Assembly (NCBI GenBank): GCA_038087875.1
Contig: JAXLNO010005853.1
Location: 124,001 to 188,000 of the forward strand
DNA from: Malacoraja senta
Lineage: Eukaryota
Reading direction: 5' to 3'
Length of the DNA: 64,000 nucleotides
A model generated the notes under the pieces. It was not told where the DNA came from, made no database searches, and saw nothing but the letters and a program-made list of their open reading frames with translations. This document shows positions 1-33,239 of the stretch, one piece after another; within the stretch, counting starts at the first letter, position 1; each line of letters opens with the position of its first letter. The position numbers were made by a program, and so were the translations under genes.

Positions 1-13
1 ATTTATGACCTTA

Positions 14-1560
14 CTAGACTAACTGGGACCCTTTAGGTCCCATTCTCACACGGGAGGGCTGGTCCCCCAACGCAATATTCCACCTCTCCACCAATTCCAA
101 TATTCCACCACTCACGCATAGCCCCCAACTGCACAGGCACAGCTGACCCTCTCATCCCCTCACCTCCCCACTCCGCCCCTTGCCCTTCCCACCCCCCATG
201 CACTCACTCCATCCCCCCCTCAAACCACCCCCTCCCCATCCACTCTTAGAGGCTCTCCGGCAGCGCAACCATTCCCTCCCATTGGGGTCCCATTGTGACG
301 TAGATAACGCAGGTATTACTGTGCAGGTGCAGCTGATGGGCACGGCAAGTGGAAAAGGGATTTATTAAAGCTTAAAATGTGAATAACTCTTAAAATATAA
401 CAACAATTTATATGTTAAAGAGGAGATTTATTCAGTCCATTCTTTCTTGTTGCATCTTTTGTTGCGTTCTGCAGCTGGGGGAGGGCGTCGTCTTCAGGCG
501 GGGGTTATCGGGGGCCGGTCGGGGAGCATCCTGCAGCCTGGGGAGGGGCACGGCTTCAGACGGTGTTGTTGGGGGCCGATGGGGGAGGGGGGAATATCCT
601 GCAGCCGGGGGAGGGGGTCGGCTTGAGGCAGAGGCCAGTGGGGGGAGCTTTCTGGAGGACTAGTATGGGTGTTGTGGACCAAAGTGACTGGTTTCCAGAG
701 GGCTGCCATGGCCTACCACTGCCGTGGCCTGCCGCTGGGGGGGGGGTGATGTGTGAGGGGAGAGGGTTGGGGGTGTGTGTGCAGGGGTGGTGAGACTTGT
801 GGACTCACAGTTCACTCACTCACGGCTTGCGGACTCACAGTTCACTCAGCCACATCTTGTGGACTCACAGTTCACACAGCCACAGCTTGTGGACTCACAA
901 TTCACTCATCTAGGGCTTGCAGACTCACGGTTCACTCAGCCACGGCTTGTGGACTCACAGTTCACTCAGCCACGGCTTGCGGACTCACAGTTCACTCAGC
1001 CACGGCTTGCGGATTCACAGGTCACTCAGCCACGGCTTGCGGACTCACAGTTCACTCGGACACGGCTAGCGGACTCACAGTTCACTCGGCCACGGCTTGC
1101 GGATTCACAGTTCACTTAGTCATGGCTTGTGGACTCACAGTTCACTCAGCCACGACTTGCGGACTCACAGTTCACTCAGCCACGGCTTGCGGACCCACAG
1201 ATCAGTCACTCACAGCTTGCGGACTTGCAGTTCAATCACTCACGGCCTGCGGACTCACAGTTCAGTCACTCACGGCTTGTGGACTCACTGTTCAGTCACT
1301 CACGGCTTGCGGACTCACAGTTCAGTCACCCACGGCTTTCGGACTCACAGTTCAGTCACTCACGGCTTGCGGACTCACAGTTCAGTCACTCACGGCTTGC
1401 GGAATCACAGTTCAGTAACTCACGGCTTGTGGACTCACAGTTCAGTCACTCACGGCTTGTGGACTCACAGTTCAGTCACTCATGGCATGTAGACCTAATG
1501 GAAGGTTTCAGAAAGCATGGGGACCTTTTTTAAATGCATTCCAGGTTTTGCAAATGCTTG
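14..1560 (-). mobile_element. Non-autonomous Helitron-like element A (3' end at 14; 5' end not resolved)
   Basis: The minus strand ends TGGGACC-TAAAG-GGTCCCA hairpin, GTTAGT, CTAG|T, the canonical Helitron 3' end. It contains an internal minisatellite and no RepHel ORF. Confidence 0.7.
790..1490. repeat. 30-bp minisatellite (TTCACTCAGCCACGGCTTGCGGACTCACAG), ~23 units in two variant blocks
   Basis: Exact 30-bp periodicity; the unit switches to TTCAGTCACTCACGG... at ~1200. Confidence 0.95.
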
Positions 1561-2252
1561 ATCATCAAGTACAGTTTAACAGCTTAACAGTCTATCCATT
1601 CACTTATCGTGGATTATTGTTGTGACAGGCTGATATTTGCATATGCTCACTGGCAATGACTGGGGAGTGATTATTTTTGGTATCTCGTTTTTTTGGGGGG
1701 GGGGTTTCATTGTTGTCTCGTTATATGTTGGCATAAGTTGTTTTTTATCTATTCTTTTCGTACACTCTATCTGTAAAAAATGGACAACTTTGCACTTTGT
1801 TATGTCTTGAAAACTAAACAATAAGATTTTGATTTTTTTTAAAAGGGAAGAATTCTTCAGGTTACTAGTTTTAAAAATGGCAGACCGATTTTCCTTTTAC
1901 AAACATGAGAAAATAGTCATGAGTCAAACTAATAGCCAGACAAGTCAAACCTGCTTCATCTTTGATGAAAATATAGCTGATATTCCATTGTCCTGCACTA
2001 TTCTCAAATCCACATCTGCAACTGTTCTCTTTCCTTCTACTCTCACCAGGGGAAAGGGATGAGAAGCATCTTCTTGAAAGACAGCACAGTGGTTCATCTG
2101 GTGGAGCTACTGCTTCAGGACGCAAGATAACCTGGTTCAATCCTGAACTCAGATTCTGTCTGTGTAGAGTTTGCACCTTCTCCCTATGAACATGTGGATT
2201 TTCTCCCACATCCCAAAGACAAACGGGTTTGTAGGTTAAATTGTCCTCTGTA

Positions 2253-4837
2253 TGGATAAAGTTCATGGATAAAGTTGTTATATGACAAGCCGACTGCCAG
2301 AATACTGACTAACCAAATACTCTCACCTAAATTTCAGCTATCCAGGGGCAATAGACAAGGGTGTGCATTATCACCCCTGTTATTTGCCCTTGCGATTGAA
2401 CCTTTAGCAGAAAGTATAAGAGTACATCCGAATTCATAGCAAAAGGATTTGAGTATAAGAGCAGGGAGGTTCTACTGCAGTTGTACAGGGTCTTGGTGAG
2501 GCCACACCTGGAGTATTGCATACAGTTTTGGTCACCAAATCTGAGGAAAGACATTCTTGCCATAGAGGGAGTACAGAGATGGTTCACCAGACTGATTCCT
2601 GGGATGGCAGGACTTTCATATGAAGATAGACTGGATAGACTCGGCTTGTACTCGCTAGAATTTAGAAGATTGAGGGGGGATCTTATAGAAACTTACAAGA
2701 TTCTTAAGGGGTTGGACAGGCTAGATGCAGGAAGATTGTTCCCGATGTTGGGGAAGTCCAGAACAAGGGGTCACAGTTTAAGGATAAGGGGGAAGTCTTT
2801 TAGAACCGAGATGAGAAAATCATTTTTCACACAGAGAGTGGTGAATCTGTAGAATTCTCTGCCACAGAAGGTAGTTGAGGCCAGTTCATTGGCTATATTT
2901 AAGAGGGATTTAGATGTGGCCCTTGTGGCTAAAGGGGTCAGGGGGTATGGAGAGAAGGCAGGTACAGGATACTGAGTTGGATGATCAGCCATGATCATAT
3001 TGAATGGCGGTGCAGGCTCGAATGGCCGAATGGCCTACTCCTGCACCTATATTCTATGTTTCTATGTTTCTATGAATATTCACGGATCTAATACTAAATA
3101 TTCTAATAATAAAATATCATTATATGCAGATGATGTATTACGATATATCACCAATTCACAAGTTAGCATTCCAAACATACTAAACCTTATAGAAGAATTC
3201 GGTTCCTTTTCAGGATATAGAATAAACTGGAACAAAAGTGAAATTATGTCAATAAAGCCTCAAGATCCGACACACCTTCTAAAATTCCCTTTTAGAATTG
3301 CTACGGAAAAATTTAAATATGTTCACGTAACTAGAAAATACACTTCTCTATTTCAAGCAAACTTTCCTCCATTAATTACCAAACTAAATGCCCTTATTCA
3401 ATTTTGGAAAACGCTTCCGATGTCTCTCATAGGCTGAATAAACGCCATAAAGATGAACTTCCTTCCACAAATCCTGTACTTATTTATCTCCCTAAAATTT
3501 TTTTTTTTAACTCGTTTCTCTGATCACAAACTTTATTTGGGATTATAAAACACACAGAATCCATAAACGACATCTATGTAAAGCTAAAGAAATTGGCGGA
3601 TTGGCTCTCCCCAATTTTTTGTACTATTACTGGGCAACGAATATCAAAAACGTAATCTATTGGATGGACAACACATGCCAACAGGTAAAATGGTTAATAA
3701 TGGAGAGAGAAGATTGTTTGCCTTTAAATATAGGCACGATTCTTCTCTCTCCAATAAATTTGAAGAAAACACTATATGAGAAAAATCTGATTATCCATAG
3801 TACTCTACGAATCTGGAAACAAGTGAAGTCAACCCATAAACTGAGAAATTTATCTCTTCTCTCACCAATTGCCAACAACCCCTCGTTCAAGCCGTCTATC
3901 TTAGACAAGACATTCATACACTGGGAAAGATTAGGAATTAAAAAATTGGGAGATCTTTATGAGATGGGAACTCTTCTCTCATTTCAAGAATTACAGTCGA
4001 GATATCATCTGAAAAGTAGCCAATACTTTAGATATCTTCAAATACGAGACTATCTGAAATCATATACCCAAGACTATCAATATATCGTTCCAGACACACT
4101 AGACGAATGTATGAATAGAAACTCGGATTCAAACAAGTTAATATCATACCTTTATAATACCCTTTTAAATATACAAACCACATCATCAGAAGTAATTAGA
4201 AGAGCTTGGGAAGATGAACTCGGCCTAACAATTTTAAAAGACAGATGGGAGGAAAGCCTTCTATATATACACAATTGGTCTCTTGCCGTTAGGCATTCGC
4301 TAATACAATTTAAAATACTGCATAGACTCTATTATTCAAAGTCTAAATTGAATAAGATCTTCCCAAATGTTTCTCCTATTTGTGATAAATGTCTCCTTCA
4401 GGAAGCAACTATAACCCATTCCTTTGCCTCTTGTATAAAGTTACATCATTTCTGGAGAGGAATTTTTGGAATTTTTGAAATTTTTTCTAAAACACTTAAA
4501 ATAAAATTGGACCCCGACACTGAACTGATCACTCTTGGTACTTCAGAAGCCTGTTCTGAGCTAACACTATTTCAAAGACGTTTCCTTAATTATGGCCTGA
4601 TTCTTTTTTTTTTCTTTCTTTTATCCACTCTTTGGCCACACTACTTTGGTAGTCTAGGGGTCCCATCTTTACACCTCTCACTTTTTCTCTCTCTTGTTCT
4701 TTCTCTTTTCGTTTCCTTTATTTTAAAGCTTAAAAGTTAAAATTGAAGCTGTACATTAACTGTATAATTATATATGCCGTTTGTTCTACTCTTGTACATT
4801 TGCTTCTAATAAATTAAAAAAATTAAAAATGTAAATA
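2253..4837 (+). mobile_element. 5'-truncated L1/Tx1-type LINE, ORF2 RT and C-terminus, frameshifted
   Basis: Translations [28 protein letters not shown] and QFKILHRLY...CDKC; A-rich tail; 15-bp TSD AAATTGTCCTCTGTA at 2238-2252 and 4838-4852. Confidence 0.92.
2434..3073 (+). mobile_element. CR1 LINE 3' fragment nested in L1
   Basis: LVRPHLEYCIQFWSP...GVQRWFTR; (TTCTATGT)n tail; the L1 reading frame VHPN|IHG is continuous across it (GAAT duplicated). Confidence 0.95.
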
Positions 4838-5150
4838 AAATTGTCCTCTGTAAATTGCCCCAAGTGTGTATTGGAGTGGATGTAAAAGCGGAATAACATA
4901 GAACTTGTGTGAATGGATGTTCAATGCTTAGCATGGACTCGGTGAGCCGAAGCGTTTGTTTCCATGCAATATCTTTAAAATAATCACATATCGGATTCTG
5001 TATCAGGCCATGGAGAGCCATACACATGGAAGTCTTGAATAATATCTCAGCAATCATCATGTCAGCCTAGCCCAGGAATTCAAGGCAGAGACTCGAGAAT
5101 GACCTGATCCAGTGGGAACTGCCTGCTACAGGGAGAAGACGAGTTGAAAC

Positions 5151-5391
5151 AGGGAGAGCCAGTGGATGTAGTGTACCTGGACTTTCAGAAAGCATTTGAT
5201 GTCCCACATAGGAGATAAGTGGGAAAAATTAGAGCACATGGTATTGGGGGTAGGGTGCTGACATGGATAGAAAATTGGTTGGCAGACAGGAAACAAAGGT
5301 TAGTGATTAACGGGTCCCTTTCAGAATGGCAGGCAGTGACTAGTGGGGTTCCGCAAGGCTCGGTGCTGGGACCGCAGCTATTTACAATATA
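5151..5391 (+). mobile_element. CR1 RT fragment, part 1 (continues at 14148)
   Basis: DVVYLDFQKAFD...[15 protein letters not shown]. Confidence 0.93.
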
Positions 5392-5399
5392 CTAGACTA

Positions 5400-6113
5400 T
5401 GTAGCGTGTTCGTCATTTCTATATTTTTTGTTTTTTTAATATGTCTAAGTGTTTGTTTTGGGTGTCTCTCGGTATGTCTTGTGTGAGGGGTGGTGGGGGG
5501 GAAAAGGGGGAAACTGTTTTTCAGTCACTTTCTCGACAGAGAGGCGACTTTTTCCATGTCGCTTCTCTGCCTCCCCTCTCACGGCCTGACAGCTTGGAAT
5601 GGAGCGGCCTTTCCCAGAGTCGGGCCCAAAGCATCAGCAGCGGGCGCAGCGTGGACTTTTCCATCGCGGAGTGGGGTGAACCGTTGCCGGAGGTTCCCAG
5701 AAAGGAGTGCTCCGATCGCTGGCCTGGTGACTTTGGCATCGTGGGGGTTGTGGTCTGTGGAGCTTCTACCGCGGGCGTGGCATGACATGGAGTTTGGGAT
5801 CCCTTGCCGGGGATTGCTGGAGAAGAGCTCCGACCGCCAGCCTGCGGCCCACAAAATCTTGAAGCCGTGGTCTCCGGTGGGAAAGTGGCCGATTCGGGCA
5901 CTCCAAGCCGCGGAGTGTATTTGACCGTCCCGACATCGGAGTTTTGATCATCCCAACGAGAGGGCCTGTACATCTGGTCGTCCGTAGCAGCGACTACGGA
6001 GGGTTTATGGCCCCAACCACAGATGAACAAAGGGAGGAGGACTAACTGAACTTTGTTGCCTTCCACCACAGTGAAAAATGCTGTGGTGGATGTTTGTGTT
6101 AAATTTTATTGTG
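5400..6113 (+). mobile_element. Unclassified non-autonomous interspersed repeat fragment inserted at the Helitron terminus
   Basis: Flanked by TACTAGACTA at 5390-5399 and 6114-6123. It shares TTGCCTTCCA(C/T)CACAGTG...CTGTGGTGGATGTTT with 35580-36310. Confidence 0.6.
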
Positions 6114-6317
6114 TACTAGACTAAGTGGGACCCATTGGGTCCCAGCTTCACACGGGAGGGCTGGTCACCCAATGCAATATTCCACCTCTCCACCAATTCC
6201 AATATTGCTGGCCAGGAAGGGGGGGGGGGTTCTGGAGCGCTAGTATGGTTGTTGTAGGTCAAAGGGACTTGTTTCCAGAGGCCTTGTATGGACATTGTCG
6301 GCCGAATGGATTCTTGG

Positions 6318-6480
6318 GCTGGCAGCTCCGTCACTGCGGCCAGGCAACTCAGTCACTCAGGCCAGGCAGCTCAGTCACTCAGGCCAGGCAGCTCAGTCAC
6401 TCAGGCCAGGCAGCTCAGTCACTCAGGCCAGGCAGCTCAGTCACTCAGGCCTGGCAGCTCAGTCACTCAGGCATGGCAGG
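6318..6480. repeat. 22-bp minisatellite (GGCCAGGCAGCTCAGTCACTCA)
   Basis: Direct periodicity; the mirror copy at ~21650-21870 has more units. Confidence 0.92.
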
Positions 6481-6757
6481 TTGGCAGCTCAGTATCTCGG
6501 GCCTGGTGGGCTGGCAGCTGAGAATGCCAGAAATTCTGCTGAAAACAGGTGACAGACTGTGAGAGAGAATGGGGAGAGGGTGGACAATCAATTTCAGACA
6601 TTTATCTTTTTTTACAGATCACAGCAATTAAGGAGGAAAGTCTATCCTTGCATGGATATCTGGAGCGCTAGTATGGGTGTTGTGCATTGAAGGGACTCGT
6701 TTCAAGAGGGCTAGTATGGACTGTGGACTGAATGGATTCTTGGACTTGCAATTCAGT

Positions 6758-6890
6758 GAGTCATGGCTGGTGGGCTGGCAGTTCACTGTCATGGCTGGTG
6801 GGCTGGCAGTTCACTTACTCATGGCTTGTGGGCTGGCAGTCCAGTCACTCACGGCTGGTGTGCTGGCAGTTCACTCAGTCACTCCTCCTT
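6758..6890. repeat. 28-30-bp minisatellite (TCATGGCTGGTGGGCTGGCAGTTCAC..), related to the 30-bp array
   Basis: About 4 units sharing TCA(C/T)GGCT(T/G)G...CAGTTCA with the 790-1490 array. Confidence 0.8.
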
Positions 6891-7299
6891 CCTTCACCCC
6901 CTCACTCTGCTCCTTGCCATTCCCCTCCCCCCCATGCATTCAGTCCATCTCCTCTCAACCTGCCCCCCCATGCACTCTTAGTGGCTCTCCGTCAGCACAT
7001 CCGTTCCTGCCTATTAGGTTCCCATGGTGATGAAGAACACGTAGGCATGGCAAGTGGAAAAAGGATTTATCAAAGTTTAAAATGTGAATGACTCTTAAAA
7101 TATAACAACAATTTAAATGTTAAAGATGAGATTTATTAAGTTATTTCTTGTTGTATTCTGCTGCTCACTGCCTCTGGATTACTCTTTGCTGTTGATATAT
7201 ATATTTTTAAAGACAATTTTGATATAGTGAGATTGAGCGGTCAAATGTTAACAAAGAAAATCTGAGAATTTACCTCAAAAGTCATCATGCAGTGGAGGC

Positions 7300-7530
7300 C
7301 TGTAAATCCAATCTCACAGCACTTGAAGCGGAGTGCAGGCCGCAAGTCCAACCTCACAGCACTCCAAGCAGTGTGAAGGCAGCAAGTCCAACCACACAGC
7401 ACTCCAAGCAGAGTGCAGGCAGCAAGTCCAACCTCACAGCACACCAAGCAGAGTGCAGGCAGCAAGTCCAACCTCACAGCACTCCAAGCGGATCCAGCAA
7501 ATCCAATTTCACAGAATTTCAAGCAGAGTG
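7300..7530. repeat. 40-bp minisatellite (GCAGAGTGCAGGCAGCAAGTCCAACCTCACAGCACTCCAA)
   Basis: AAGTCCA recurs at 7344, 7384, 7424 and 7464. Confidence 0.92.
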
Positions 7531-8028
7531 TACACACATACACTCACACCCACAGACACTCACACNNNNNNNNNNNNNNNNNNNNNNNNNNNNNNNNNNN
7601 NNNNNNNNNNNNNNNNNNNNNNNNNNNNNNNNNNNNNNNNNNNNNNNNNNNNNNNNNNNNNNNNNNNNNNNNNNNNNNNNNNNNNNNNNNNNNNNCACTC
7701 ACTCAGACACTCACACACACAGACCGACACACTCACACACTCACACAAACATACACTCACAGACACAGACAGACACACTCACAGACAGACACAGACAGAC
7801 ATAGACAGACACACAGACACACAAAAAGACACACAGACAGACACACAGACACACAGACAGACACACCCACAGACAGACACACAGAAAGACACACGCACAN
7901 NNNNNNNNNNNNNNNNNNNNNNNNNNNNNNNNNNNNNNNNNNNNNNNNNNNNNNNNNNNNNNNNNNNNNNNNNNNNNNNNNNNNNNNNNNNNNNNNNNNN
8001 NNNNNNNNNNNNNNNNNNNNNNNNNNNN
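7531..8028. repeat. (CA)/(CAGA)-rich microsatellite with N runs at 7566-7695 and 7900-8028
   Basis: Directly visible; mirrored by the (TG)-rich tract at ~20137-20630 with Ns at 20464-20621. Confidence 0.95.
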
Positions 8029-8745
8029 TTTTGAATACTCAAATGACTGAGTGCGGCGTCTCCACTCAGGGCCTTCCGCAGTCAGCAACACTTTCGCGTT
8101 CAGCACGACCTCTGCACTCACCGGAAATGACGCAATCAGCATGGCCTCATGGTCAACTCTGCGTGGTGCTCAGACGTGGCAGTCCTGTCCAACTCCTGCT
8201 CTCCACACCTCGAACATCTGGCGGTGAAGTGCCGTCCCTTCTACCTCCCAAGGGAATTCACCTCCATCATCCTGACCGCGGTCTACATCCCACCCCAGGC
8301 AGACGTCCGTCTGGCACTGGAGGAGCTGCACGCCGTGGTCAACAAACACCAGACGTCTTACCCCGAGGCGTTCACCACCATAGCTGGGGACTTCAATAAG
8401 GCAAACCTAAAGAAATCACTCCCTAACTTCCACCAACATGTCTCCTGCTGCACCAGAGGACCAAACACACTCGACCACTCAAGAATGCCTATCGTTCTAT
8501 CCCTCGCCCTCACTTCGGTAAATCCGACCATACCGCGGTGCTGCTTCTTCCTGCCTACAGGCAGCAATTAAAGAGCACATCCCCAGAGGTGAGGACAGTA
8601 CAGAGCTGGTCGGGGGGGGGGGGGGGGTGGTGCAGAGGAACAACTCCAGGACTGTTTGGAGTCTGTAGACTGGGCAATGTTCAAGGACTAGGCAACAGAC
8701 CTGAACGAATACGCCACAGTCATTACAGACTTCATTAAGAAGTGT

Positions 8746-9897
8746 TAAAGAAGGAACTGCAGATGCTGGTAAATCGAAGGTACACAAAAATGCTGGAGAA
8801 ACTCAGCGGGTGCTGCAGCATCTATGGAGCGAAGGAAATAGGTAACGTTTTGGGCCGAAACCCTTCTTCAGACTGATAGGGGGTGGGGAGAAGAAAGGAA
8901 AAAAGGAAAAAGGCGGAGGAGGAGCCCGAGGGCTGGAGGAGGGGAGGAGACAACCAGATGGCTGATGAAGGGGAGGGGACAGCAAGGGCTAGCAGAATTG
9001 GGAGAATTCAATGTTCAAGCCCCCAGGATGTAGACTGCCCAAGCGGAATATGAGGTGCATTTCCTCCAATTTACGGTGTTGCTCGCTGTGGCCATGGAGG
9101 AGGCCCAGGACAGAGAGGTCAGATACGGAATGGGAGGGGGAGTTGAAGTGCTGAGCCACTGGGAGTTCAGGTTGGTTATTGCGGACCGACCGGAGGTGTT
9201 CGACGAAACGATCGCCAAGCCTCCGCTTGGTCTCACCGATGTAGATCAGCTGGCATCTAGAGCAGCGAATGCAATAGATGAGGTTGGAGGAGATGCAGGT
9301 GAACCTCTGTCGCACCTGGAACGACTGCTTGGGTCCATGAATGGAGTAGAGGGGGGAGGTGAAGGGACAAGTGTTGCATCTCTTGCGGTTGCAAGGGAAA
9401 GTACCAGGGGAGGGGGTGGTATGGGAGGGAAGGGAAGAATTGACAAGGGAGTTACGGAGGGGGCGGTCTTTGCGGAAGGCAGACATAGGGGGAGATGGGA
9501 AGATGTGGCGAGTGGTGGGGTCACGTTGGAGGTGGCGAAACTGACGGAGGATCACTTGTTGTATGTGACAGCTGGTGGGGTGAAAGGTGAGGACTAGGGG
9601 GACTCTGCCCTTGTTGTGAGTGGGGGGATGGGGAGAGAGAGCAGTGTTGCGGGGTATGGCAGAGACCCTGGTGCGAACCTCATCTATGGTGGAGGAGGGG
9701 AACCCCCGTTCCCTGAAGAATGAGGACATTTCAGATGCCCTGGTGTGGAACGCCTCATCCTGGGAGCAGATGCGGCGTAGACGGAGGAATTGGGAGTGGG
9801 GGATGGAGTCCTTACAGGAAGCAGGGTGGGAAGAAATGTAGTCCAGATAGCCATGGGAGTCGGTAGGTTTGTAGTGGATGTCGGTAAGGAGTCTATC
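8746..9897 (-). mobile_element. Penelope-like element 3' half (RT thumb + GIY-YIG endonuclease + pLTR), minus copy
   Basis: ORF 8989..9729: CNRKRCNTC, YCIRCSRCQLIYIGETKRRLGDRF, GLNI; the pLTR ends at 8746. Confidence 0.93.
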
Positions 9898-10944
9898 ATT
9901 TCCGACACTTCCCTACCATTCCTTGACCTCACTATCTCCATCGCAGGTGATAGACTCCTTACCGACACCAGGGTTCCACACCAGGGCATCTGAAATGTCC
10001 TCATTCTTCAGGGAACGGGGGTTCCGCTCCTCCACCATAGATGAGGCTCGCACCAGGGTCTCTGCCATACCCCGCAACACTGCTCTCTCTCCCCATCCCC
10101 CCACTCACAACAAGGGCAGAGTCCCCCTAGTCCTCACCTTTCACCCCACCAGCCGTCACATACAACAAGTGATCCTCCGTCAGTTTCGCCACCTCCAACG
10201 TGACCCCACCACTCGCCACATCTTCCCATCTCCCCCTATGTCTGCCTTCCGCAAAGACCGCTCTCTCCGTAACTCCCTTGTCAATTCTTCCCTTCCCTCC
10301 CATACCACCCCCTCCCCTGGTACTTTCCCTTGCAACCGCAAGAGATGCAACACTTGTCCCTTCACCTCCCCCCTCTACTCCATTCAAGGACCCAAGCAGT
10401 CGTTCCAGGTGCGACAGAGGTTCACCTGCATCTCCTCCAACCTCATCTATTGCATTCGCTGCTCTAGATGCCAGCTGATCTACATCGGTGAGACCAAGCG
10501 GAGGCTTGGCGATCGTTTCGCCGAACACCTCCGGTCGGTCCGCAATAACCAACCTGAACTCCCGGTGGCTCAGCACTTCAACTCCCCCTCCCATTCCGTA
10601 TCTGACCTCTCTGTCCTGGGTCTCCTCCATGGCCACAGCGAGCAACACCGTAAATTGGAGGAAATGCACCTCATATTCCGCTTGGGCAGTCTACATCCTG
10701 GGGGCTTGAACATTGAATTCTCCCAATTCTGCTAGCCCTTGCTGTCCCCTCCCCTTCATCAGCCATCTGGTTGTCTCCTCCCCTCCCCCAGCCCTCGGGC
10801 TCCTCCTCCGCATTTTTCCTTTTTTCCTTTCTTCTCCCCACCCCTTATCAGTCTGAAGAAGGGTTTCGGCCCGAAACGTTACCTATTTCCTTCGCTCCAT
10901 AGATGCTGCTGCACCCGCTGAGTTTCTCCAGCATTTTTGTGTAC
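9898..10944 (+). mobile_element. Penelope-like element 3' half, plus copy (inverted partner)
   Basis: ORF 9878..10735 with the same GIY-YIG motifs. The pair is flanked by the 16-bp TSD CTTCATTAAGAAGTGT (8730-8745, 10945-10960). Confidence 0.93.
10848..10885 (+). ncRNA. Minimal type-I hammerhead-ribozyme-like motif in Penelope pLTR
   Basis: CTGAAGA-A-GGG(TTTCGG)CCC-GAAAC-GTT. The core boxes and stem II are present; stems I and III are very short. Confidence 0.5.
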
Positions 10945-14804: not shown

Positions 14805-14925
14805 TGTCCCGAGGGATGCACACCTTCGGCCACTTACAACTTGGTGCTTGGGTTCAGATTGCCCAGTCACCTATGGCTTGTGTGGGAAAATGAACCCCAC
14901 ACGCTCCCGTCTCCCCTTCTCTCTC

Positions 14926-17464: not shown

Positions 17465-20010
17465 CACGTCAAGTGAGTTTATTGTCATGTGTCCCTGATA
17501 GGACAATGAAATTCTTGCTTTGCTTCAGCACAACAGAACATAGTAGGCATTGACTACAAGGCATTCTGTAAATATATACACACATGAATTAATATACTGA
17601 TAAAGTGCAAATAACAGTTAATTGGCTAATAAAGTTCAGTGTTTTGTCCGAGCCAGGTTTAATAGCCTGATGGCTGTGGGGAAGTAGCTATTCCTGAACC
17701 TGGTCATTGCAGTCTTCAGGCTCCTGTACCTTCTACCTGAAGGTAGTAGGGAGATGAGTGTGTGGCCAGGATGGTGTGGGTCCTTGATGATACTGCCAGC
17801 CTTTTTGAGGCAGCGACTGTGATAGATCCCCTCGATGGAAGGGAGGTCAGAGCCGATGATGGACTGGGCAGTGTTTACTACTTTTTGTGATCTTTTCCTG
17901 TCCAGGGTGCTCAAGTTGCCGAACCAAGCCACGATGCAACCAGTCAGCATGCTCTCTACTGTGCACCTGTAGAAGTTAGCGAGAGTCCTCCTTGACAAAC
18001 CGACTCTCCGTAATCTTCTCAGGAAGTAGAGGCGCTGATATGCTTTCTTAATAATGGCATCAGTGTTCTCGGACCAGGAAAGATCTTCAGAGATGTGCAC
18101 GCCCAGTAATTTGAAGCTCTTGACCCTTTCAACCATCGACCGTTGATATAAATGGGACTGTGGGTTTTCATCCCACTCCTTCCAAAGTCCACAATCAGTT
18201 CCTTGGTTTTGCTGGTGTTGAGGGCCAGGTTATTGTGCTGGCACCATATGGACAGTTGCTCGATCTCTCTTCTATACTCTGACTCATCCCCATCAGCGAT
18301 ATGCCCCACAACAGTGGTGTCGTCAGCGAACTTGATGCTGGAGTTCGCACTATGTCCGGCTACACAGTCATGAGTATAGAGTGAGTACAGCAGGGGGCTG
18401 AGCACGCAGCCTTGAGGTGCTCCCGTGCTGATTGTTATCGAGTCTGACACATTTCCACCAATACGAACAGACTGTGGTCTGAGAGTGAGGAAGTCGAGGA
18501 TCCAATTGCAGAGGGATGAGCAGAGACCCAGTACTGCGAGTTTGGTAACCAGCTTGAAGGAGATGGTTGTATTAAATGCCGAGCTGTAATCGATGAATAA
18601 CAGCCTGACATATGAGTTTTTGTTGTCCAAGTGGTCCAGAGCGGAGTGGAGGGCCAGCGGGATCGCATCCACCGTTGATCTGTTGTGGCGGTAAGCGAAC
18701 TGCAGTGGGTCCAGGTTTTTATCGAGGTAGGAGTTGATCTGCGTCATGATCAACCTCTCAAAGCACATCATCACCACAGGCGTTAGTGCAACAGGTCGAT
18801 AGTCATTGAGGCACGTTACCTTACTCTTCTTGGGCACTGGTATAATTGAAGCCCTTTTGAAGCAGGAGGGAACCTCAGACCTCAGACGTGAGAGGTTGAA
18901 AATGTCTGTAAATACTCCAGCCAGTTGGTCTGCACAGGTTTTAGAACACGACCAGGTATACCATCAGGTCCAGGCGCTTTTCGAGGGTTCACCCCTCTGA
19001 AGGATTTCCTGATGTCGGCCTCTGTGACTGAGAGTGAAATACTATCACAGCGAATGGGGGCTCGGGAAGGCACATCGATGTTCTCCCTATCAAAGCGTGC
19101 GTAAAACGCATTGAGCTCATCAGGGAGTGATGTTTCGCCGACATTCGAGCTGCCTCCTGATTTCGACTTGTAAGAGGTGATTGCATTCAGGCCCTGCCAC
19201 AGCCGCCGAACATCTGTCTCTTCCTCCAGTTTGGAGCAGAAGTCCCTTTTGGCCTTTTTGATGGCCTTACCAAGGTCGTATCTGGACTACTTGTAGGCCA
19301 CTGTATCATCAGACATGAATGCCCAGTGTCTGGACTTCAGAAGAGTGCGGAACTCAAAGTTCATCCAAGGTTTCTGATTGGGAAATGCTCGGAAGGTTTT
19401 GGTGGGGATGCAGTACTCCACACACTTCTTAATGAAGTCTGTAACGACTGTGGTGTATTCGTTCAGGTCCGTTGCCGAGTCCTTGAACATTGCCCAGTCT
19501 ACAGACTCCAAACAGTCCTGGAGTTGTTCCTCTGCACCCCCCCCCCCCCTCCGACCAGCTCTGTACTGTCCTCACCTCTGAGGGTGCGCACTTTAATTGC
19601 TGCCTCTAGGCAGGAAGAAGCAGCACCGTGGTATGGTCGGATTTACCGAAGTGAGGGCGAGGGATAGAACGATAGGCATTCTTGAGTGGTCAAGGGTGTT
19701 TGGTCCTCTGGTGCAGCAGGAGACATGTTGGTGGAAGTTAGGGAGTGATTTCTTTAGGTTTGCCTTATTGAAGTCCCCGGCTATGGTGGTGAACGCCTCG
19801 GGGTAAGACGTCTGGTGTTTGTTGACCACGGCGTGCAGCTCCTCCAGTGCCAGACGGACGTCTGCCTGGGGTGGGATGTAGACCGCGGTCAGGATGATAG
19901 AGGTGAATTCCATTGGGAGGTAGAAGGGACGGCACTTCACCGCCAGATGTTCGAGGTGTGGAGAGCAGGAGTTGGACAGGACTGCCACGTCTGAGCACCA
20001 CACCATGCTG
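17465..20010 (-). mobile_element. Rex1/Babar LINE, right-arm copy, uninterrupted but frameshifted
   Basis: ORFs 19593..20096, 18019..18837 and 17636..18136; single empty site GACTTCATTAAGAAGTGTGTGG. Confidence 0.93.
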
Positions 20011-22079
20011 ATTGCGTCATTTCCGGTGAGTGCAGAGGTCGTGCTGAACGCGGAAGTGTTGCTGACTGCGGAAGGCCCTGAGTGGAGACGCCGCACTCAG
20101 CCGTTTGAATATTCAAAACATTTACTGCCATATATGTGGTGTGTGTGTGTGTGAGTGTGTCTTTGTGTGTGTGTGTAAGTGTATATTTGTGTGTGTGTGT
20201 TTGTGTGTGTCTGTGCATGTGTCTGTCTGTGCGTGTGTCTGTCTGTGCGTGTGTCTGTCTGTGCGCGTGTCTTTCTGTGTGTCTGTCTGTGGGTGTGTCT
20301 GTCTGTGTGTCTGTGTGTCTGTCTGTGTGTCTGTCTGTGTGTCTGTGTGTCTGTCTATGTCTGTCTGTGTCTGTCTGTGAGTGTGACTGTCTGTGTCTGT
20401 GAGTGTATGTTTGTGTGAGTGTGTGAGTGTGTTGGTCTGTGTGTGTGAGTGTCTGAGTGAGTGNNNNNNNNNNNNNNNNNNNNNNNNNNNNNNNNNNNNN
20501 NNNNNNNNNNNNNNNNNNNNNNNNNNNNNNNNNNNNNNNNNNNNNNNNNNNNNNNNNNNNNNNNNNNNNNNNNNNNNNNNNNNNNNNNNNNNNNNNNNNN
20601 NNNNNNNNNNNNNNNNNNNNNGTGTGTACGCTCTGCTTGAAATTCTGTGAAATTGGATTTGCTGGATCCGCTTGGAGTGCTGTGAGGTTGGACTTGCTGC
20701 CTGCACTCTGCTTGGTGTGCTGTGAGGTTGGACTTGCTGCCTTCACACTGCTTGGGGTGCTGTGAGGTTGGACTTGCGGCCTGCACTCCGCTTCAAGTGC
20801 TGTGAGATTGGATTTACAGGCCTCCACTGCATGATGACTTTTGAGGTAAATTCTCAGATTTTCTTTGTTAACATTTGACCGCTCAATCTCTCTATATCAA
20901 ATTGTCTTTAAAAATATATATATATCAACAGCAAAGAGTAATCCAGAGGCAGTGAGCAGCAGAATACAACAAGAAATAACTTAATAAATCTCATCTTTAA
21001 CATTTAAATTGTTGTTATATTTTAAGAGTCATTCACATTTTAAACTTTAATAAATCCTTTTTCCACTTGCCATGCCTGCGTGTTCTTCATCACCATGGGA
21101 ACCTAATAGGCAGGAACGGATGTGCTGACGGAGAGCCACTAAGAGTGCATGGGGGGGCAGGTTGAGAGGAGATGGACTGAATGCATGGGGGGGGAGGGGA
21201 ATGGCCAGGAGCAGAGTGGGGGAGGGGGTGAAGGAAGGAGGAGTGACTGAGTGAACTGCCAGCACTCCAGCTGTGAGTGACTGGACTGCCAGCCCACAAG
21301 CCATGAGTAAGTGAACTGCCAGACCACCAGCCATGACAGTGAACTGCCAGCCCACCAGCCATGACTCACTGAATTGCAAGTCCAAGAATCCATTCAGTCC
21401 ACAATGTCCATACTAGCCCTCTTGAAACGAGTCCCTTCAAGGCACAACACCCATACTAGCGCTCCAGATATCCATGCAAGGATAGACTTTCCTCCTTAAT
21501 TGCTGTGATCTGTAAAAAAAGATAAATGTCTGAAATTGATTGTCCACCCTCTCCCCCTTCTCTCTCACAGTCTGTCACCTGTTTTCAGCAGAATTTCTGG
21601 CATTCTCAGCTGCCAGCCCACCAGGCCCGAGATACTGAGCTGCCAACCTGCCATGCCTGAGTGACTGAGCTGCCAGGCCTGAGTGACTGAGCTGCCTGGC
21701 CTGAGTGACTGAGGTGCCTGACCTGAGTGACAATCTGCCTGGCCTGAGTGACTGAGCTGCCTGGCCTGAGTGACTGAGCTGCCTGGCCTGAGTGACTGAG
21801 CTGCCTGGCCTGAGTGACTGAGCTGCCTGGCCTGAGTGACTGAGCTGCCTGGCCGCAGTGACTGAGCTGCCAGCCCAAGAATCCATTTGGCCGACAATGT
21901 CCATACAAGGCCTCTGGAAACAAGTCCCTTTGACCTACAACAACCATACTAGCGCTCCAGAACCCCCCCCCCCCCTTCCTGGCCAGCAATATTGGAATTG
22001 GTGGAGAGGTGGAATATTGCATTGGGTGACCAGCCCTCCCGTGTAAAGCTGGGACCCAATGTGTCCCACTTAGTCTAGT

Positions 22080-22794
22080 ACACAATAAAATTTAACACAA
22101 ACATCCACCACAGCATTTTTCACTGTGGTGGAAGGCAACAAAGTTCAGTTAGTCCTCCTCCCTTTGTTCATCTGTGGTTGGGGCCATAAACCCTCCGTAG
22201 TCGCTGCTACGGACGACCAGATGTACAGGCCCTCTCGTTGGGATGATCAAAACTCCGATGTCGGGACGGTCAAATACACTCCGCGGCTTGGAGTGCCCGA
22301 ATCGGCCACTTTCCCACCGGAGACCACGGCTTCAAGATTTTGTGGGCCGCAGGCTGGCGGTCGGAGCTCTTCTCCAGCGATCCCCGGCAAGGGATCCCAG
22401 ACTCCATGTCATGCCACGCCCGCGGTAGAAGCTCCACAGACCACAACCCCCACGATGCCAAAGTCACCAGGCCAGCGATCGGAGCACTCCTTTCTGGGAA
22501 CCTCCGGCAACGGTTCACCCCGCTCCGCGATGGAAAAGTCCACGCTGCGCCCGCTGCTGATGCTTTGGGCCCGACTCTGGGAAAGGCCGCTCCATTCCAA
22601 GCTGTCAGGCCGTGAGAGGGGAGGCAGAGAAGCGACATGGAAAAAGTCGCCTCTCTGTCGAGAAAGCGACTGAAAAACAGTTTCCCCCTTTTCCCCCCCA
22701 CCACCCCTCACACAAGACATACCGAGAGACACCCAAAACAAACACTTAGACATATTAAAAAAACAAAAAATATAGAAATGACGAACACGCTACA
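22080..22794 (-). mobile_element. Unclassified repeat fragment, right-arm copy of 5400-6113
   Basis: Reverse-complement match. Confidence 0.6.
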
Positions 22795-22802
22795 TAGTCT
22801 AG

Positions 22803-23043
22803 TATATTGTAAATAGCTGCGGTCCCAGCACCGAGCCTTGCGGAACCCCACTAGTCACTGCCTGCCATTCTGAAAGGGACCCGTTAATCACTAACCTTTG
22901 TTTCCTGTCTGCCAACCAATTTTCTATCCATGTCAGCACCCTACCCCCAATACCATGTGCTCTAATTTTTCCCACTAATCTCCTATGTGGGACATCAAAT
23001 GCTTTCTGAAACTCCAGGTACACTACATCCACTGGCTCTCCCT
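22803..23043 (-). mobile_element. CR1 RT fragment, part 1 (right-arm copy)
   Basis: ORF 22799..23032 ...[16 protein letters not shown]. Confidence 0.92.
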
Positions 23044-24353
23044 GTTTCAGCTTGGCTTCTCCCTGTAGCAGGCAGTTCCCACTGGATCAGGTAATTCTCG
23101 AGTCTCTGCCTTGAATTCCTGGGCCAGGCTGACATGATGATTGCTGAGATAATATTCAAGGCTCTCCATGGCCTGATACAGAATCCGATATGTGATTATT
23201 TTAAAGAAATTGCATGGAAACAAACCCTTCAGCTCACCGAGTCCATGCTAACTATCGAACATCCATTCACACAAGTTCTATGTTATTCCGCTTTTACATC
23301 CACTCCAATACACACTTGGGGCAATTTACAGAGGACAATTTTATTTAAATTTTAAATTTTTTTAATTTATTAGAAGCAAATGTACAAGAGTAGAACAAAC
23401 GGCATATATAATTATAGTTAATGTACAGCTTCAATTTTAACTTTTTAGCTTTAAAATAAAGGAAACGAAAAGAGAAAGAACAAGAGGGAGAAAAAGTGAG
23501 AGGTGTAAAGATGGGACCCCTAGACTACCAAAGTAGTGTGGCCAAAGTGGATAAAAGAAAGAAAGAAAAAAAAGAATCAGGCCATAATTAAGGAAACATC
23601 TTTGAAATAATGTTAGCTCAGAACAGGCTTCTGAAGTACCAAGAGTGATCAGTTCAGTGGCGGGGTCCAATTTTATTTTAAGTGTTTTAGAACAAATTTC
23701 AAAAATTCCAAAATTCCTCTCCAGAAATGATGTAACTTTATACAAGAGGCAAAGGAATGGGTTATAGTTGCTTCCTGAAGGAGACATTTATCACAAATAG
23801 GAGAAACATTTGGGAAGATCTTATTCAGTTTAGACTTTGAATAATAGAGTCTGTGCAGTATTTTAAATTGTATTAACGAATGCCTAACGTTAAGAGAACA
23901 ATTGTGTATATATAGAAGGCTTTCCTCCCATCTGTCTTTTAAAATTGTTAGGCAAAGTTCATCTTCCCAAGCTCTTCTAATTACTTCTGATGATGTGGTT
24001 TGTATATTTAAAAGGGTATTATAAAGGTATGATATTAACTTGTTTGAATCCGAGTTTCTATTCATACATTCGTCTAGTGTGTCTGGAACCATATATTGAT
24101 AGTCTTGGGTATATGATTTCAGATAGTCTCGTATTTGAAGATATCTAAAGTATTGGCTACTTTTCAGATGATATTTTGACTGTCATTCTTGAAATGAGAG
24201 AAGAGTTCCCATCTCATAAAGATCTCCACATTTTAAATTCCTAATCTTTCCCAGTGTGTGAACGTCTTCTCTAAGATAGACGGCTTGAACGAGGGGTTGT
24301 TAGCAATTGGTGAGAGAAGAGATAAATATCTCAGTTTATGGGTTGACTTCACT

Positions 24354-25328
24354 CTACGGAGGGTATCAGAAGAGACTGGGAACAAGAGTTAGCTATTAAA
24401 ATTTCAAACGAAAGTTGGAATGAATACTTATTAAACGTGCATAAATGCTCGATTAATGTAAGACACACTTTAATACAATTTAAAATTTTACATAGATTAT
24501 ATTATTCGAAAACTAAAATTCATAAAATTTTCCCAAATGTAATCATCTATTTGTGATAAATGTCAATCCCAAGAAGCTACCATAACGCACTCATTTGTTT
24601 CTTGTACAAAAATTCAAAAATTTTGGAATTAAATTTTTGAAATCTTTACAAAGTTATTTAAAACAAGACTGATACCCAAAGCAGAATGGATTATCTTCGG
24701 TATAACGGAAGATGGTCCAGAACTAAATGTGTTTCAAAAGAAACTAATGGACTATGGGTTAATAACTGGAAAAAAGCTAATTCTAAAATTTTGGAAGAAG
24801 GCTCCAATACCAACTATAAATATGTGGATTTCAAATATGTTTGAAACATTACACCTAGAAGAGATAAGACTCCTCCAAGCAGGTAAACCAGATCACTTCC
24901 ACCTGACGTGGTCTGCATTTATAGAATTATTACAAACATAGGGTGCAAAAGTACTTTAAAAAAAATTGAGGTCAGGTAAGGGGGGATGATAGTTGAAGAG
25001 TTGGTATGTCCCATTTACGTAATGCTCATAAAAATATTTGTTTCTCTCTTTTTCCTCTTTCTCTCTTTCTTTCTTTCCTAGGGTCTATTTCTTAACTCTT
25101 TTTCTTTTGTTTTTAATTTTGCTCTTATAGGGTCTTCGACCTTTTTTGTTGTCACATTTTCTACACTTTCACTTTTTCCTTCACTTTCTTCTTTCTTTCA
25201 ATCTTTTACTTTTCTAGTGTAAAAAATAAATGGAGTACATTAATTGTAAGAAGATATAAATGACAAGTACTAATGTATGTGGTTGTAATGTAATGTACGT
25301 CTAATAAAATACAAATTAAAAAAAAATA
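24354..25328 (+). mobile_element. Second L1-family 3' fragment inserted antisense into the host L1 (right arm only)
   Basis: QFKILHRLYYSKTK, GKKLILKFWK; pyrimidine-rich 3' UTR; AATAAA + A tail; flanked by a ~170-bp direct duplication. Confidence 0.88.
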
Positions 25329-26246
25329 ATTCTTGAAATGAGAGAAGAGTTCCCATCTCATAAAGATCTCCCAATTTTTTAATTCCTAATCTTTCCCAGT
25401 GTGTGAACGTCTTGTCTAAGATAGACGGCTTGAACGAGGGGTTGTTGGCAATTGGTGAGAGAAGAGATAAATTTCTCAGTTTATGGGTTGACTTCACTTG
25501 TTTCCAGATTCGTAGAGTACTATGGATAATCAGATTTTTCTCATATAGTGTTTTCTTCAAATTTATTGGAGAGAGAAGAATCGTGCCTATATTTAAAGGC
25601 AAACAATCTTCTCTCTCCATTATTAACCATTTTACCTGTTGGCATGTGTTGTCCATCCAATAGATTACGTTTTTGATATTCGTTGCCCAGTAATAGTACA
25701 AAAAATTGGGGAGAGCCAATCCGCCAATTTCTTTAGGTTTACATAGATGTCGTTTATGGATTCTGTGTGTTTTATAATCCCAAATAAAGTTTGTGATCAG
25801 AGAAACGAGTTAAAAAAAAAAAATTTAGGGAGATAAATAAGTACAGGATTTGTGGAAGGAAGATCATCTTTATGGCATTTATTCAGCCTATGAGAGACAT
25901 CGGAAGCATTTTCCAAAATTGAATAAGGGCATTTAGTTTGGTAGTTAATGGAGGAAAGTTTGCTTGAAATAGAGAAGTGTATTTTCTAGTTACGTGAACA
26001 TATTTAAATTTTTCCGTAGCAATTCTAAAAGGGAATTTTAGAAGGTGTGTCGGATCTTGAGGCTTTATTGACATAATTTCACTTTTGTTCCAGTTTATTC
26101 TATATCCTGAAAAGGAACCAAATTCTTCTATAAGGTTTAGTATGTTTGGAATGCTAACTTGTGAATTGGTGATATATAGTAATACATCATCTGCATATAA
26201 TGATATTTTATTATTAGAATATTAAGTATTATATCCGTGAATATTC

Positions 26247-26886
26247 ATAGTAACATAGAAACATAGAAAATAGGTGCAGGAGTAGGCCATTCGGCCCTTC
26301 GAGCCTGCACCGCCATTCAATATGATCATGGCTGATCATCCAACTCAGTATCCTGTACCTGCCTTCTCTCCATACCCCCTGATCCCTTTAGCCACAAGGG
26401 CCACATCTAAATCCCTCTTAAATATAGCCAATGAACTGGCCTCAACTACCTTCTGTGGCAGAGAATTCTACAGATTCACCACTCTCTGTGTGAAAAATGA
26501 TTTTCTCATCTCGGTTCTAAAAGACTTCCCCCTTATCCTTAAACTGTGACCCCTTGTTCTGGACTTCCCCAACATCGGGAACAATCTTCCTGCATCTAGC
26601 CTGTCCAACCCCTTAAGAATTTTGTAAGTTTCTATAAGATCCCCCCTCAATCTTCTAAATTCTAGCGAGTACAAGCCGAGTCTATCCAGTCTATCTTCAT
26701 ATGAAAGTCCTGCCATCCCAGGAATCAGTCTGGTGAACCATCTCTGTACTCCCTCTGTGGCAAGAATGTCTTTCCTCAGATTTGGTGACCAAAACTGTAT
26801 GCAATACTCCAGGTGTGGCCTCACCAAGACCCCGTACAACTGCAGTAGAACCTCCCTGCTCTTATACTCAAATCCTTTTGCTATGA
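26247..26886 (-). mobile_element. CR1 3' fragment nested in L1 (right-arm copy)
   Basis: ORF 26468..26839; mirror of 2434-3073. Confidence 0.93.
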
Positions 26887-27531
26887 ATTCGGATGTACTC
26901 TTATACTTTCTGCTAAAGGTTCAATCGCAAGGGCAAATAACAGGGGTGATAATGCACACCCTTGTCTATTGCCCCTGGATAGCTGAAATTTAGGTGAGAG
27001 TATTTGGTTAGTCAGTATTCTGGCAGTCGGCTTGTCATATAACAACTTTATCCATGAACTTTATCCATACAGAGGACAATTTAACCTACAAACACTTGTC
27101 TTTGGGATGTGGGAGAAAATCCACATGTTCATAGGGAGAAGGTGCAAACTCTACACAGACAGAATCTGAGTTCAGGATTGAACCAGGTTATCTTGCGCTC
27201 TGAAACAGTAGCTCCACCAGATGAACCACTTTGCTGTCTTTCAAGAAGATGCTTCTCATCCCTTTCCCCTGGTGAGAGTAGAAGGAAAGAGAACAGCTCC
27301 AGATGTGGATTTGAGAATAGTGCAGGACAATGGAATATCAGCTATATTTTCATCAAAGTTGAAGCAGGTTTGACTTGTCTGACTATTAGTTTGACTCATG
27401 ACTATTTTCTCATGTTTGTAAAAGGAAAATCGGTCTGCCATTTTTAAAACCAGTAACCTGAAGAATTCTTCCCTTTTAAAAAAATCAAAATCTTATTGTT
27501 TAGTTTTCAAGACATAACAAAGTGCAAAGTT

Positions 27532-27849
27532 TGGACGACAGATGGCGCAAAGTGCAAAGTTTGGACGACAGATGTCGTTGTGTCCTTGGGCAAGACACTT
27601 CACCCACCTTTGCCTGCGTGTGAATGTGTGTGAATGTGTGTGAATGTGTGTGAGTGACTGGTGGTGGTCGGAGGGGCCGCAGGCGCAGATTAGCAGCCAC
27701 GCTTCCGTTAGTCTGCCCCAGGGCAGCTGTGGCTACAGAAGTAGCTCACCACCACCGAGAGTGACTGAGGAGTGAATGAATAATGCGATGTAAAGTGCCT
27801 TGAGTATTAGAAAGGCGCTATATAAATCCCATCCATTATTATTATTATT
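27532..27849 (+). mobile_element. 5'-truncated SINE with L2-type tail (right arm only)
   Basis: GTGTCCTTGGGCAAGACACTTCACCC...GCCCCAGGGCAGCTGTGGCTAC...TGTAAAGTGCCTTGAG...AAAGGCGCTATATAAAT and an (ATT)n tail. AAAGTT is duplicated at 27526-27531 and 27850-27855. The left arm has the empty site at ~1783-1800. Confidence 0.85.
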
Positions 27850-28079
27850 AAAGTTGTCCATTTGTTACAGACAGAGTGTACGAAAAGAATAGATAAAAAA
27901 CAACTTATGCCAACATATAACGAGACAACAATGAAAACCCCCCCAAAAAAACGAGATACCAAAAATAATCACTCCCCAGTCACTGCGAGTGAGCATATGC
28001 AAATATCAGCCTGTCACAACAATAATCCACAATAAGTGAATGGATAGACTGTTAAGCTGTTAAACTGTACATGATAATC

Positions 28080-29565
28080 AAGCATTTGCAAAACCTGGAA
28101 TGCATTTAAAAAAGGTCCCCACGCTTTCTGAAACCTTCCATTAGGTCTACATGCCATGAGTGACTGAACTGTGAGTCGACAAGCCATGAGTGACTGAACT
28201 GTGAGTCCACAAGCCGTGAGTGACTGAACTGTGATTCCGCAAGCCGTGAGTGACTGAACTGTGAGTCCGCAAGCCGTGAGTGACTGAACTGTGAGTCCGC
28301 AAGCCGTGAGTGACTGAACTGTGAGTCCGCAGGCCGTGAGTGATTGAACAGCGAGTCCGCAAGCCGTGAGTGACTGATCTGTGTGTCCGCAAGCCGTGGC
28401 TGAGTGAACTGTGAGTCCGCAAGTCGTGGCTGAGTGAACTGTGAGTCCGCAAGCCATGACCGAGTGAACTGTGAGTCCGCAAGCCGTGGCCGAGTGAACT
28501 GTGAGTCCGCAAGCCGTGGCCGAGTGAACTGTGAGTCCGCAAGCCATGGCTGAGTGACCTGTGAGTCCGCAAGCCGTGGCTGAGTGAACCGTGAGTCCGC
28601 AAGCCGTGGCTGAGTGAACTGTGAGTCCGCAAGCCGTGGCTGAGTGAACCGTGAGTCCGCAAGCACTAGACGAGTGAATTGTGAGTCCACAAGCTGTGGC
28701 TGTGTGAACTGTGAGTCCGCAAGATGTGGCTGAGTGAACTGTGAGTCCGCAAGCCGTGAGTGAGTGAACTGTGAGTCCACAAGTCTCACCACCCCTGCAC
28801 ACACACCCCCAACCCCCTCCCCTCACATATCACCCGACCCCCCCAGTGGCAGGCCACGGCAGCGGTAGGCCATGGCAGCCCTCTGGAAACCAGTCACTTT
28901 GGTCCACAACACCCATACTAGTCCTCCAGAAAGCTCCCCCCACTGGCCTCTGCCTGAAGCCGACCCCCTCCCCCGGCTGCAGGATATTCCCCCTCCCCCA
29001 TCGGCCCCCAACAACACCATCTGAAGCCGTGCCCTCCCCAGGCTGCAGGATGCTCCCCGACTGGCCCCCGATGGCCCCCGCCTGAAGACGACGCCCTCCC
29101 CCAGCTGCAGAACGCAACAAGAGATGCAACAAGAAAGAATGGACTGAATAAATCTCCTCTCTAACATTTAAATTGTTGTTATATTTTAAGAGTTATTCAC
29201 ATTTTAAGCTTTAATAAATCCCTTTTCCACTTGCCGTGCCCATGAGCTGCACCTGCACAGTAATACCTGCATTATCTACGTCACAATGGGAACCCAATGG
29301 GAGGGAATGGTTGCGCCACCGGAGAGCCGCTAAGAGTGGATGGGGAGGGGGTGGTTTGAGGGGGGATGGAGTGAGTGCATGGGGGAGTGGGAAGGGCAAG
29401 GGGCGGAATGGGGAGGGTGAGGGGAGGAGGGGGTCAGCTGAGTCTGCGCAGTTGGGGGCTATGCGTGAGTGGTGGAATATTGGAATTGGTGGAGAGGTGG
29501 AATATTGCGTTGGGGGACCAGTCTCCCGTGTGAGAATGGGACCTAAAGGGTCCCAGTTAGTCTAG
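28080..29565 (+). mobile_element. Helitron-like element A, right-arm copy, including the 30-bp array at ~28150-28785
   Basis: Hairpin TGGGACC/GGTCCCA, then GTTAGT, then CTAG|T at 29562-29566. Confidence 0.7.
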
Positions 29566-29579
29566 TAAGGTCATAGATT

Positions 29580-32303: not shown

Positions 32304-32329
32304 CATTACCACAAAGATCATTGATAACA

Positions 32330-33225: not shown

Positions 33226-33239
33226 GTTCTCAGAGAGGA

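Follow-up and report, generated by a model that had tools for sequence, protein, structure and literature searches.

Does the mirror-image sequence that opens this window (the whole stretch of 64,000 nucleotides from the skate Malacoraja senta that was analysed) exist in the chromosome, or only in the scaffold? The duplication is genuine as sequence in the scaffold. As a chromosome structure the palindrome is unproven, and the mirror adjacency of its two arms rests on the scaffold only. We consider a false duplication more likely than a real palindrome, and set out here the arms, the gap between them, their divergence, the corresponding loci of related skates and the explanations that compete.

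Two collinear copies of one segment

Self-BLAST joins the two arms, A (1-14804) and B (29578-15569), as collinear, inverted copies in a single chain, with identities of 90-98.6% per block. The arms and the blocks of the chain are as follows.

1-14804, plus strand: arm A, nested transposons and minisatellites (self-BLAST chain, block-wise MAFFT)
15569-29578, minus strand: arm B, inverted copy of arm A (self-BLAST)
A 1-1791 = B 29578-27850, inverted: chain block 1 (self-BLAST)
A 1786-3993 = B 27531-25327, inverted: chain block 2 (self-BLAST)
A 3822-7492 = B 24353-20632, inverted: chain block 3 (self-BLAST)
A 7696-7899 = B 20463-20260, inverted: chain block 4 (self-BLAST)
A 8029-8745 = B 20118-19422, inverted: chain block 5 (self-BLAST)
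A 10945-14804 = B 19437-15569, inverted: chain block 6 (self-BLAST)

The original prediction, that the elements of 1-14804 recur reverse-complemented in 15569-29578, is borne out by this chain. Because unrelated transposons and minisatellites follow one another in the same nested order in A and B (TRF, ORFs), the arms represent one duplicated segment and not a chance likeness. Independent transposon copies, the other candidate considered, are excluded by the nested order that several unrelated elements and the minisatellites share between the arms.

The prediction had also named three transposon insertions, substitutions and tandem-repeat copy numbers as the differences between the arms, and all of these are found. 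The larger ones are listed together with an insertion that both arms carry.

8746-10944, no strand assigned: Penelope-like head-to-head dimer of 2,199 bp, A only (self-BLAST, GIY-YIG ORFs)
27532-27849, minus strand: SINE-like element of 318 bp with an (ATT)n tail, B only (self-BLAST, alignment)
24354-25326, minus strand: poly-A-tailed LINE 3' fragment of 973 bp, B only (self-BLAST, alignment)
796-1494, plus strand: minisatellite of 23 copies of a 30-bp unit (TRF, alignment)
5392-14143, plus strand: composite insertion with a nested reverse transcriptase (RT) element, both arms (comparison with thorny skate locus L003)

The two halves of the Penelope dimer (8776-9751 and 10948-9973) are 98.6% alike, and the dimer is flanked by a 16-bp target-site duplication, CTTCATTAAGAAGTGT, at 8730-8745 and 10945-10960. 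The empty site is preserved in B, where CTTCATTAAGAAGTGT is single-copy at 19422-19437. On either side of the LINE fragment lies one copy of a 172-bp direct duplication (24182-24353 and 25327-25498), which corresponds to A 3822-3993. No second copy of the SINE-like insert was found in the window or in the loci of six relatives. The partner of the 30-bp minisatellite in B (28153-28783) has 21 copies of the unit, a difference of 60 bp. The composite insertion splits a CR1 copy into 4830-5391 and 14144-14422, and the RT ORF lies at 18019-18837 in arm B.

The adjoining receptor gene

The arms lie beside an immune-receptor locus, as had been proposed, with the exons of an immunoglobulin-type receptor at 47.8-39.6 kb on the minus strand.

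39565-47782, minus strand: Siglec-15-like V-C2-TM receptor gene (ORFs, tblastn with skate proteins)
about 47300-47782, minus strand: V exon (ORFs, tblastn)
44586-44872, minus strand: C2 exon (ORFs, tblastn)
39565-40010, minus strand: TM exon (ORFs, tblastn)
40178-44344: 4.2-kb CR1 element in a receptor intron (Pfam on the CR1 ORFs)
29579-39564, minus strand: spacer downstream of the receptor gene, orthologous to thorny skate and Rhinoraja spacers

The V exon search led to gene models of thorny skate, little skate and Rhinoraja. Beyond this gene, at 49-64 kb, tblastn with skate proteins found no match to further receptor cassettes. Further 3' tail exons may lie inside the spacer, near 36.6-36.9 and 33.8 kb. 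The parts of the arms that fall within the window carry transposons only.

Position 29578 mirrors the first base of the window, and is therefore a limit of the window and not a boundary of the arm. The homology of the arms, which had been traced to base 1, almost certainly runs on upstream, judging from the thorny skate (Amblyraja radiata) ortholog, which is unbroken from the receptor 3' exons through 29578 into the arm. This ortholog, locus L004, follows the order of the window over the C2 exon (from 44872), the TM exon and all of the spacer, aligns without a break across 29578 (29982-29120, the part inside arm B corresponding to A 2-456), and continues to A 1841-2024.

N runs and the centre of the mirror

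There are four N runs in the window (7566-7695, 7900-8028, 15369-15568 and 20464-20621). They fall at the following sites, listed with the unpartnered inner end of A.

7566-8028, no strand assigned: two N runs in A around a (CA/CAGA)n microsatellite (self-BLAST, TRF, sequence)
20464-20621, no strand assigned: N run in B at the homologous microsatellite site (self-BLAST, sequence)
15369-15568, no strand assigned: 200-N run, the sole true scaffold gap and nominal centre of the palindrome (N-run scan)
14805-15368, plus strand: inner end of A, with no partner in B (TRF, composition scan, self-BLAST)

The three microsatellite runs preserve order, orientation and spacing between the arms. The first A run and the B run stop at the same homologous base, and the anchors on either side (A 7537 with B 20622, and A 7696 with B 20463) enclose 158 positions in each arm, made up of 28 letters and 130 N in A, and of 158 N in B. 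Opposite the second A run, of 129 N, arm B has 141 real bases, one 12-bp unit more. Because estimated gap sizes would match less well, these three runs behave like length-preserving masks over known sequence.

The 200-N run is of another kind, and lies exactly between the two copies. Homology in arm B begins at 15569, the first base past this run. On the other side, the 564 unpartnered bases of A consist of about 105 ordinary bases followed by a polypyrimidine (CT) array that extends from about 14910 to the contig end.

Divergence between the arms

Block-wise alignments of A and B contain 264 mismatches in 12,141 aligned bases, with a transition-to-transversion ratio of 165:99. With the tandem repeats left out, 209 of 9857 sites are substituted, a divergence of 2.12% counting substitutions only. 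Divergence per kilobase varies between 0.9 and 3.4%, and this heterogeneity is significant (p = 3.5e-4). The resulting identity of 97.9% lies below the criterion of about 99.9% for palindromes maintained by conversion, and the suggestion of arm-to-arm gene conversion finds no support here, as an identity at this level carries no sign of sustained conversion.

When thorny skate serves as the outgroup in a three-way alignment, the derived changes fall almost evenly on the two arms (20 versus 23). Unequal branch lengths, at which BLAST identities had hinted, disappear in this alignment. On this comparison both copies are equally old, and younger than the split from thorny skate. Collinear nested transposons, private insertions with target-site duplications and symmetric derived changes together identify the arms as copies of one segment. 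The two copies are oppositely oriented and each has since acquired mutations of its own, as in an inverted segmental duplication, where the orientation is that given by the scaffold only.

The layout in related skates

The best orthologous identities are 92-95% in thorny skate, 92.6% in Leucoraja erinacea and 88-90% in Rhinoraja longicauda; the loci compared include those on A. radiata CM021368.1 and R. longicauda CM130165.1. A second thorny skate locus, L003, contains no N and starts with the orthologs of A 2097-2252, 4830-5391 and 14144-14422, joined directly to one another at 91-94% identity to these three segments. The composite insertion is absent here, with L003 133-692 and 689-965 joining the CR1 halves directly, so that the 8.8-kb insertion and other elements are specific to the lineage of the window. 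Most of the 15 kb of the arm consists of transposons inserted in that lineage only.

L003 continues into CT-rich arrays (1651-2850 and 3751-4800), and about 18 kb further on reaches a same-strand receptor gene at its V1 region. Within 40 kb, L003 shows no inverted copy of the arm. Since the thorny skate ortholog of the arm and its CT array precede a same-strand gene, the mirror layout is not ancestral, and its absence would fit either a young event or an artefact. Receptor units stand in tandem in the relatives (thorny skate L004; Rhinoraja L005 and L006). Two units on the same strand are found 80 kb apart in Rhinoraja, and three receptor genes of mixed orientation are spread over 600 kb in thorny skate. 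The proposal of a large inverted amplicon thus stands in part: the arms are duplicates of one ancestral segment, but thorny skate has no palindrome at the orthologous site.

A probable head-to-head join of two contigs

The mirror layout is probably, by a modest preponderance, an artefact of scaffolding that joined two homologous contigs end to end. These would be the two alleles of a locus or, with about the same likelihood, paralogous units that lie next to each other. The sequence shows the duplication, its divergence, the gap at the centre and an ancestral layout that is not palindromic, whereas we infer the mis-join itself, the status of the copies as alleles or paralogues, and the technology behind the break.

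Under this explanation both arms would be true copies, each assembled on its own, of the transposon-filled spacer downstream of the Siglec-15-like receptor gene. One contig (X) would end at 15368 within the polypyrimidine (CT) array. The other (Y) would run from 15569 to at least 64000, its sole N run being the probable mask at 20464-20621, and would halt about 100 bases before the equivalent CT array, read from the same side. Dropout of long reads over GA/CT-rich sequence may have broken both copies at this array, and the scaffolder would then have oriented contigs X and Y so that the homologous ends meet at a 200-N placeholder. HiFi coverage falls over GA-rich sequence (PMC9186530), which would account for the shared break point of the two copies at the CT array.

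Several observations favour such a join. The sole true gap lies at the centre, arm B starts at its edge, and the last 564 bases of A are left unpartnered. A gap between copies is a recognized hallmark of false duplications, one that true duplications lacked in the comparison by the Vertebrate Genomes Project, VGP (PMC9516828, PMC8081667), and the two copies meet at a gap here. At 2.12%, the divergence is comparable in magnitude with the genome-wide heterozygosity of 1.56% in little skate, a different species (PMC10115646). The equal branch lengths are those expected of copies of equal age. In thorny skate, an N-free stretch holds the arm ortholog and its CT arrays, then about 18 kb and a same-strand gene, with no mirror, and the relatives carry their receptor units in tandem.

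The closest known counterpart is the heterotype (haplotypic) false duplication described in VGP assemblies. There, too, diverged copies abut a gap with homology reaching the contig end, in a repeat-rich polymorphic region, and the arms in the window diverge to a degree comparable with the heterozygosity of a related skate. Unlike the inverted skate arms, most of the published cases (Rhie et al., 2021, PMC8081667; Ko et al., 2022, PMC9516828) are tandem. Siglec-15-like arrays in A. radiata and R. longicauda provide the second point of reference. They share with the window a unit of gene, spacer and CT array at 88-95% identity, in several copies per cluster, but in these arrays the spacer is followed by a same-strand unit, whereas in the window it is followed by its own mirror image.

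A possible lineage-specific inverted duplication

The main competitor to a contig join is less probable, and takes the assembly to be correct. A real, lineage-specific inverted segmental duplication would span no less than 15 kb per arm, and probably 34 kb or more, and would have arisen once this lineage had separated from Amblyraja and Leucoraja. Possible routes include a break followed by fold-back, or template switching, at the triplex-prone polypyrimidine tract. It would put two Siglec-15-like receptor genes tail to tail. The copies would since have drifted 2.1% apart and gained three private transposon insertions, with a hard-to-read centre that is merely missing from the assembly. The fully specified version, in which arms of at least 34 kb flank a triplex-prone polypyrimidine centre with the two Siglec-15-like genes tail to tail, is slightly more doubtful again.

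Distinct arms, and private insertions with proper target-site duplications, are what such a duplication would leave, and the number of these insertions matches the substitution divergence, considering how many shared insertions built up after thorny skate branched off. Both the private insertions and the even branch lengths suit paralogues as well as alleles. The receptor family forms a fast-duplicating cluster that occupies both orientations in thorny skate. The CT array at the inner end would explain an assembly break at a true centre, and a centre composed of CT array, spacer and GA array would assemble with exactly the appearance seen here. Against this stand the homology of the arms beginning at the very edge of the gap, the non-palindromic ortholog in thorny skate, and an identity that gives no sign of arm-to-arm homogenization.

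Palindromes of proven structure offer a comparison. In the large ampliconic palindromes of mammalian sex chromosomes, such as P1-P8 of the human Y, arms of tens of kilobases surround a short spacer next to multi-copy genes; the arms carry genes, and the structure has been proven on single clones. The arms of palindromes P1-P8 are reportedly at least 99.9% identical through gene conversion (Skaletsky et al., 2003; Rozen et al., 2003). The skate arms, as arranged in the scaffold, resemble P1-P8 in their length, inverted orientation, short spacer and multi-copy gene neighbourhood, and differ in that the human arms are gene-bearing and at least 99.9% identical, whereas the skate arms carry transposons only within the window and are 97.9% identical.

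Public sequencing runs were also compared with the arms, which have about 48% of their 31-mers in common. The word share of the arm A query is 0.65 and 0.53 in the best two samples and 0.36-0.43 in the others; that of the arm B query is 0.55 and 0.43 in the best two samples and 0.33-0.41 in the others. These shares are model-dependent: on a crude model A-type words would be better represented than B-type words in the best two samples, but the two would be equally represented if the Penelope words are saturated. The lower shares of B might, on the first of these models only, count against a real duplication. The near-constant share of about 0.4 in the remaining runs looks like generic transposon words. 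Two arm ORFs, one used in an exact look-up and one in a homology search, returned no public contigs.

A fold-back chimera, produced by a long read with an overlooked hairpin adapter, is highly improbable, as is an assembler error that duplicated the end of a contig in reverse. Such artefacts are usually recognized by an inverted repeat at the contig end, but they give near-identical arms, whereas these arms differ by 2.12%, three insertions with target-site duplications and tandem-repeat copy number, and their derived changes are split evenly (20 versus 23). The private insertions and the divergence effectively refute both.

Implications for receptor clusters

If the mirror is an artefact, claims about receptor copy number, palindromes or gene conversion at this skate locus need checks of read depth and spanning reads, and the same warning applies to other 200-N joins in this assembly. 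If it is real, the window would hold a young, large palindrome in a cartilaginous-fish immune-receptor cluster, with a plausible breakpoint at an H-DNA-type tract. Such a young autosomal immune-locus palindrome would have been caught before or without homogenization, with a candidate fold-back breakpoint, and would be of moderate interest for the expansion and rearrangement of receptor clusters.

Two results are useful under either reading. For three of the four N runs, order and length agree from one arm to the other, and in thorny skate the ortholog supplies the ancestral, non-mirrored layout.

The inverted arms and the spacer

The contig carrying arm A (1-14804) stops at 15368 inside a polypyrimidine (CT) array. 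Comparable sequence exists in thorny skate (Amblyraja radiata, CM021368.1; locus L003), as follows.

L003 1651-2850: CT-rich array, about 1 kb
L003 3751-4800: CT-rich array, about 1 kb

Because these arrays come after the A. radiata sequence orthologous to the inner end of the arm, the polypyrimidine tract at the contig break is, on comparative sequence grounds, an old and conserved part of the spacer.

Three runs of N lie within the arms, all over a (CA/CAGA)n microsatellite.

7566-7695: N run, arm A
7900-8028: N run, arm A
20464-20621: N run, arm B (15569-29578, the inverted copy)

In the arm-to-arm comparison, the positions between shared anchors are equal in number (158 in arm B and 28 + 130 in arm A), and the runs at 7566-7695 and 20464-20621 stop at one and the same homologous base. 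For the run at 7900-8028, the 129 positions of arm A correspond to 141 in arm B, a difference of one 12-bp unit. The three runs look like length-preserving masks over the microsatellite rather than assembly gaps.

Among the insertions private to one arm are the following, the first in arm A and the second in arm B.

8730-10960: Penelope-like head-to-head dimer with a single 16-bp target-site duplication, CTTCATTAAGAAGTGT
24182-25498: 973-bp poly-A-tailed 3' fragment of a LINE, with a flanking 172-bp direct duplication of its target

With its two halves 98.6% alike, the Penelope-like dimer seems to have arisen after the arms diverged. The target-site duplication around the LINE fragment is unusual both in its length and in its uneven mutation; compared with arm A, one 172-bp copy has 2 differing bases and the other 11.

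Both arms (2032-2175 and 27143-27286) match residues 184-231 of a Rhinoraja gene model (P0156) over 48 residues at 73-75%, and these residues probably represent a transposon-derived exon in the automatic Rhinoraja model.

The receptor gene and other repeats

Relative to the gene models of thorny and little skate (L001 16482-30035 and L002 17126-21088), the Siglec-15-like receptor gene of the window (39565-47782, minus strand) lacks the V2-V4-bearing stretch; the break point, at 45054, adjoins a LINE fragment. On this comparison, either the window's copy is a one-V deletion derivative or domains were gained by the others.

40178-42723: copy of a young CR1 family
54323-56890: second copy of the same family, inverted relative to the first and 11.6 kb from it

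These copies are 97.2% alike, and one from thorny skate (L003 29966-33035) shows 95.9% identity. The family either evolves very slowly or has been active recently across skate genera.

58886-60510 and 62493-64000: direct repeat of about 1.5 kb, 95-98% identity, period about 3.6 kb, reaching the window end

This repeat could represent a tandem duplication or one element in two copies.
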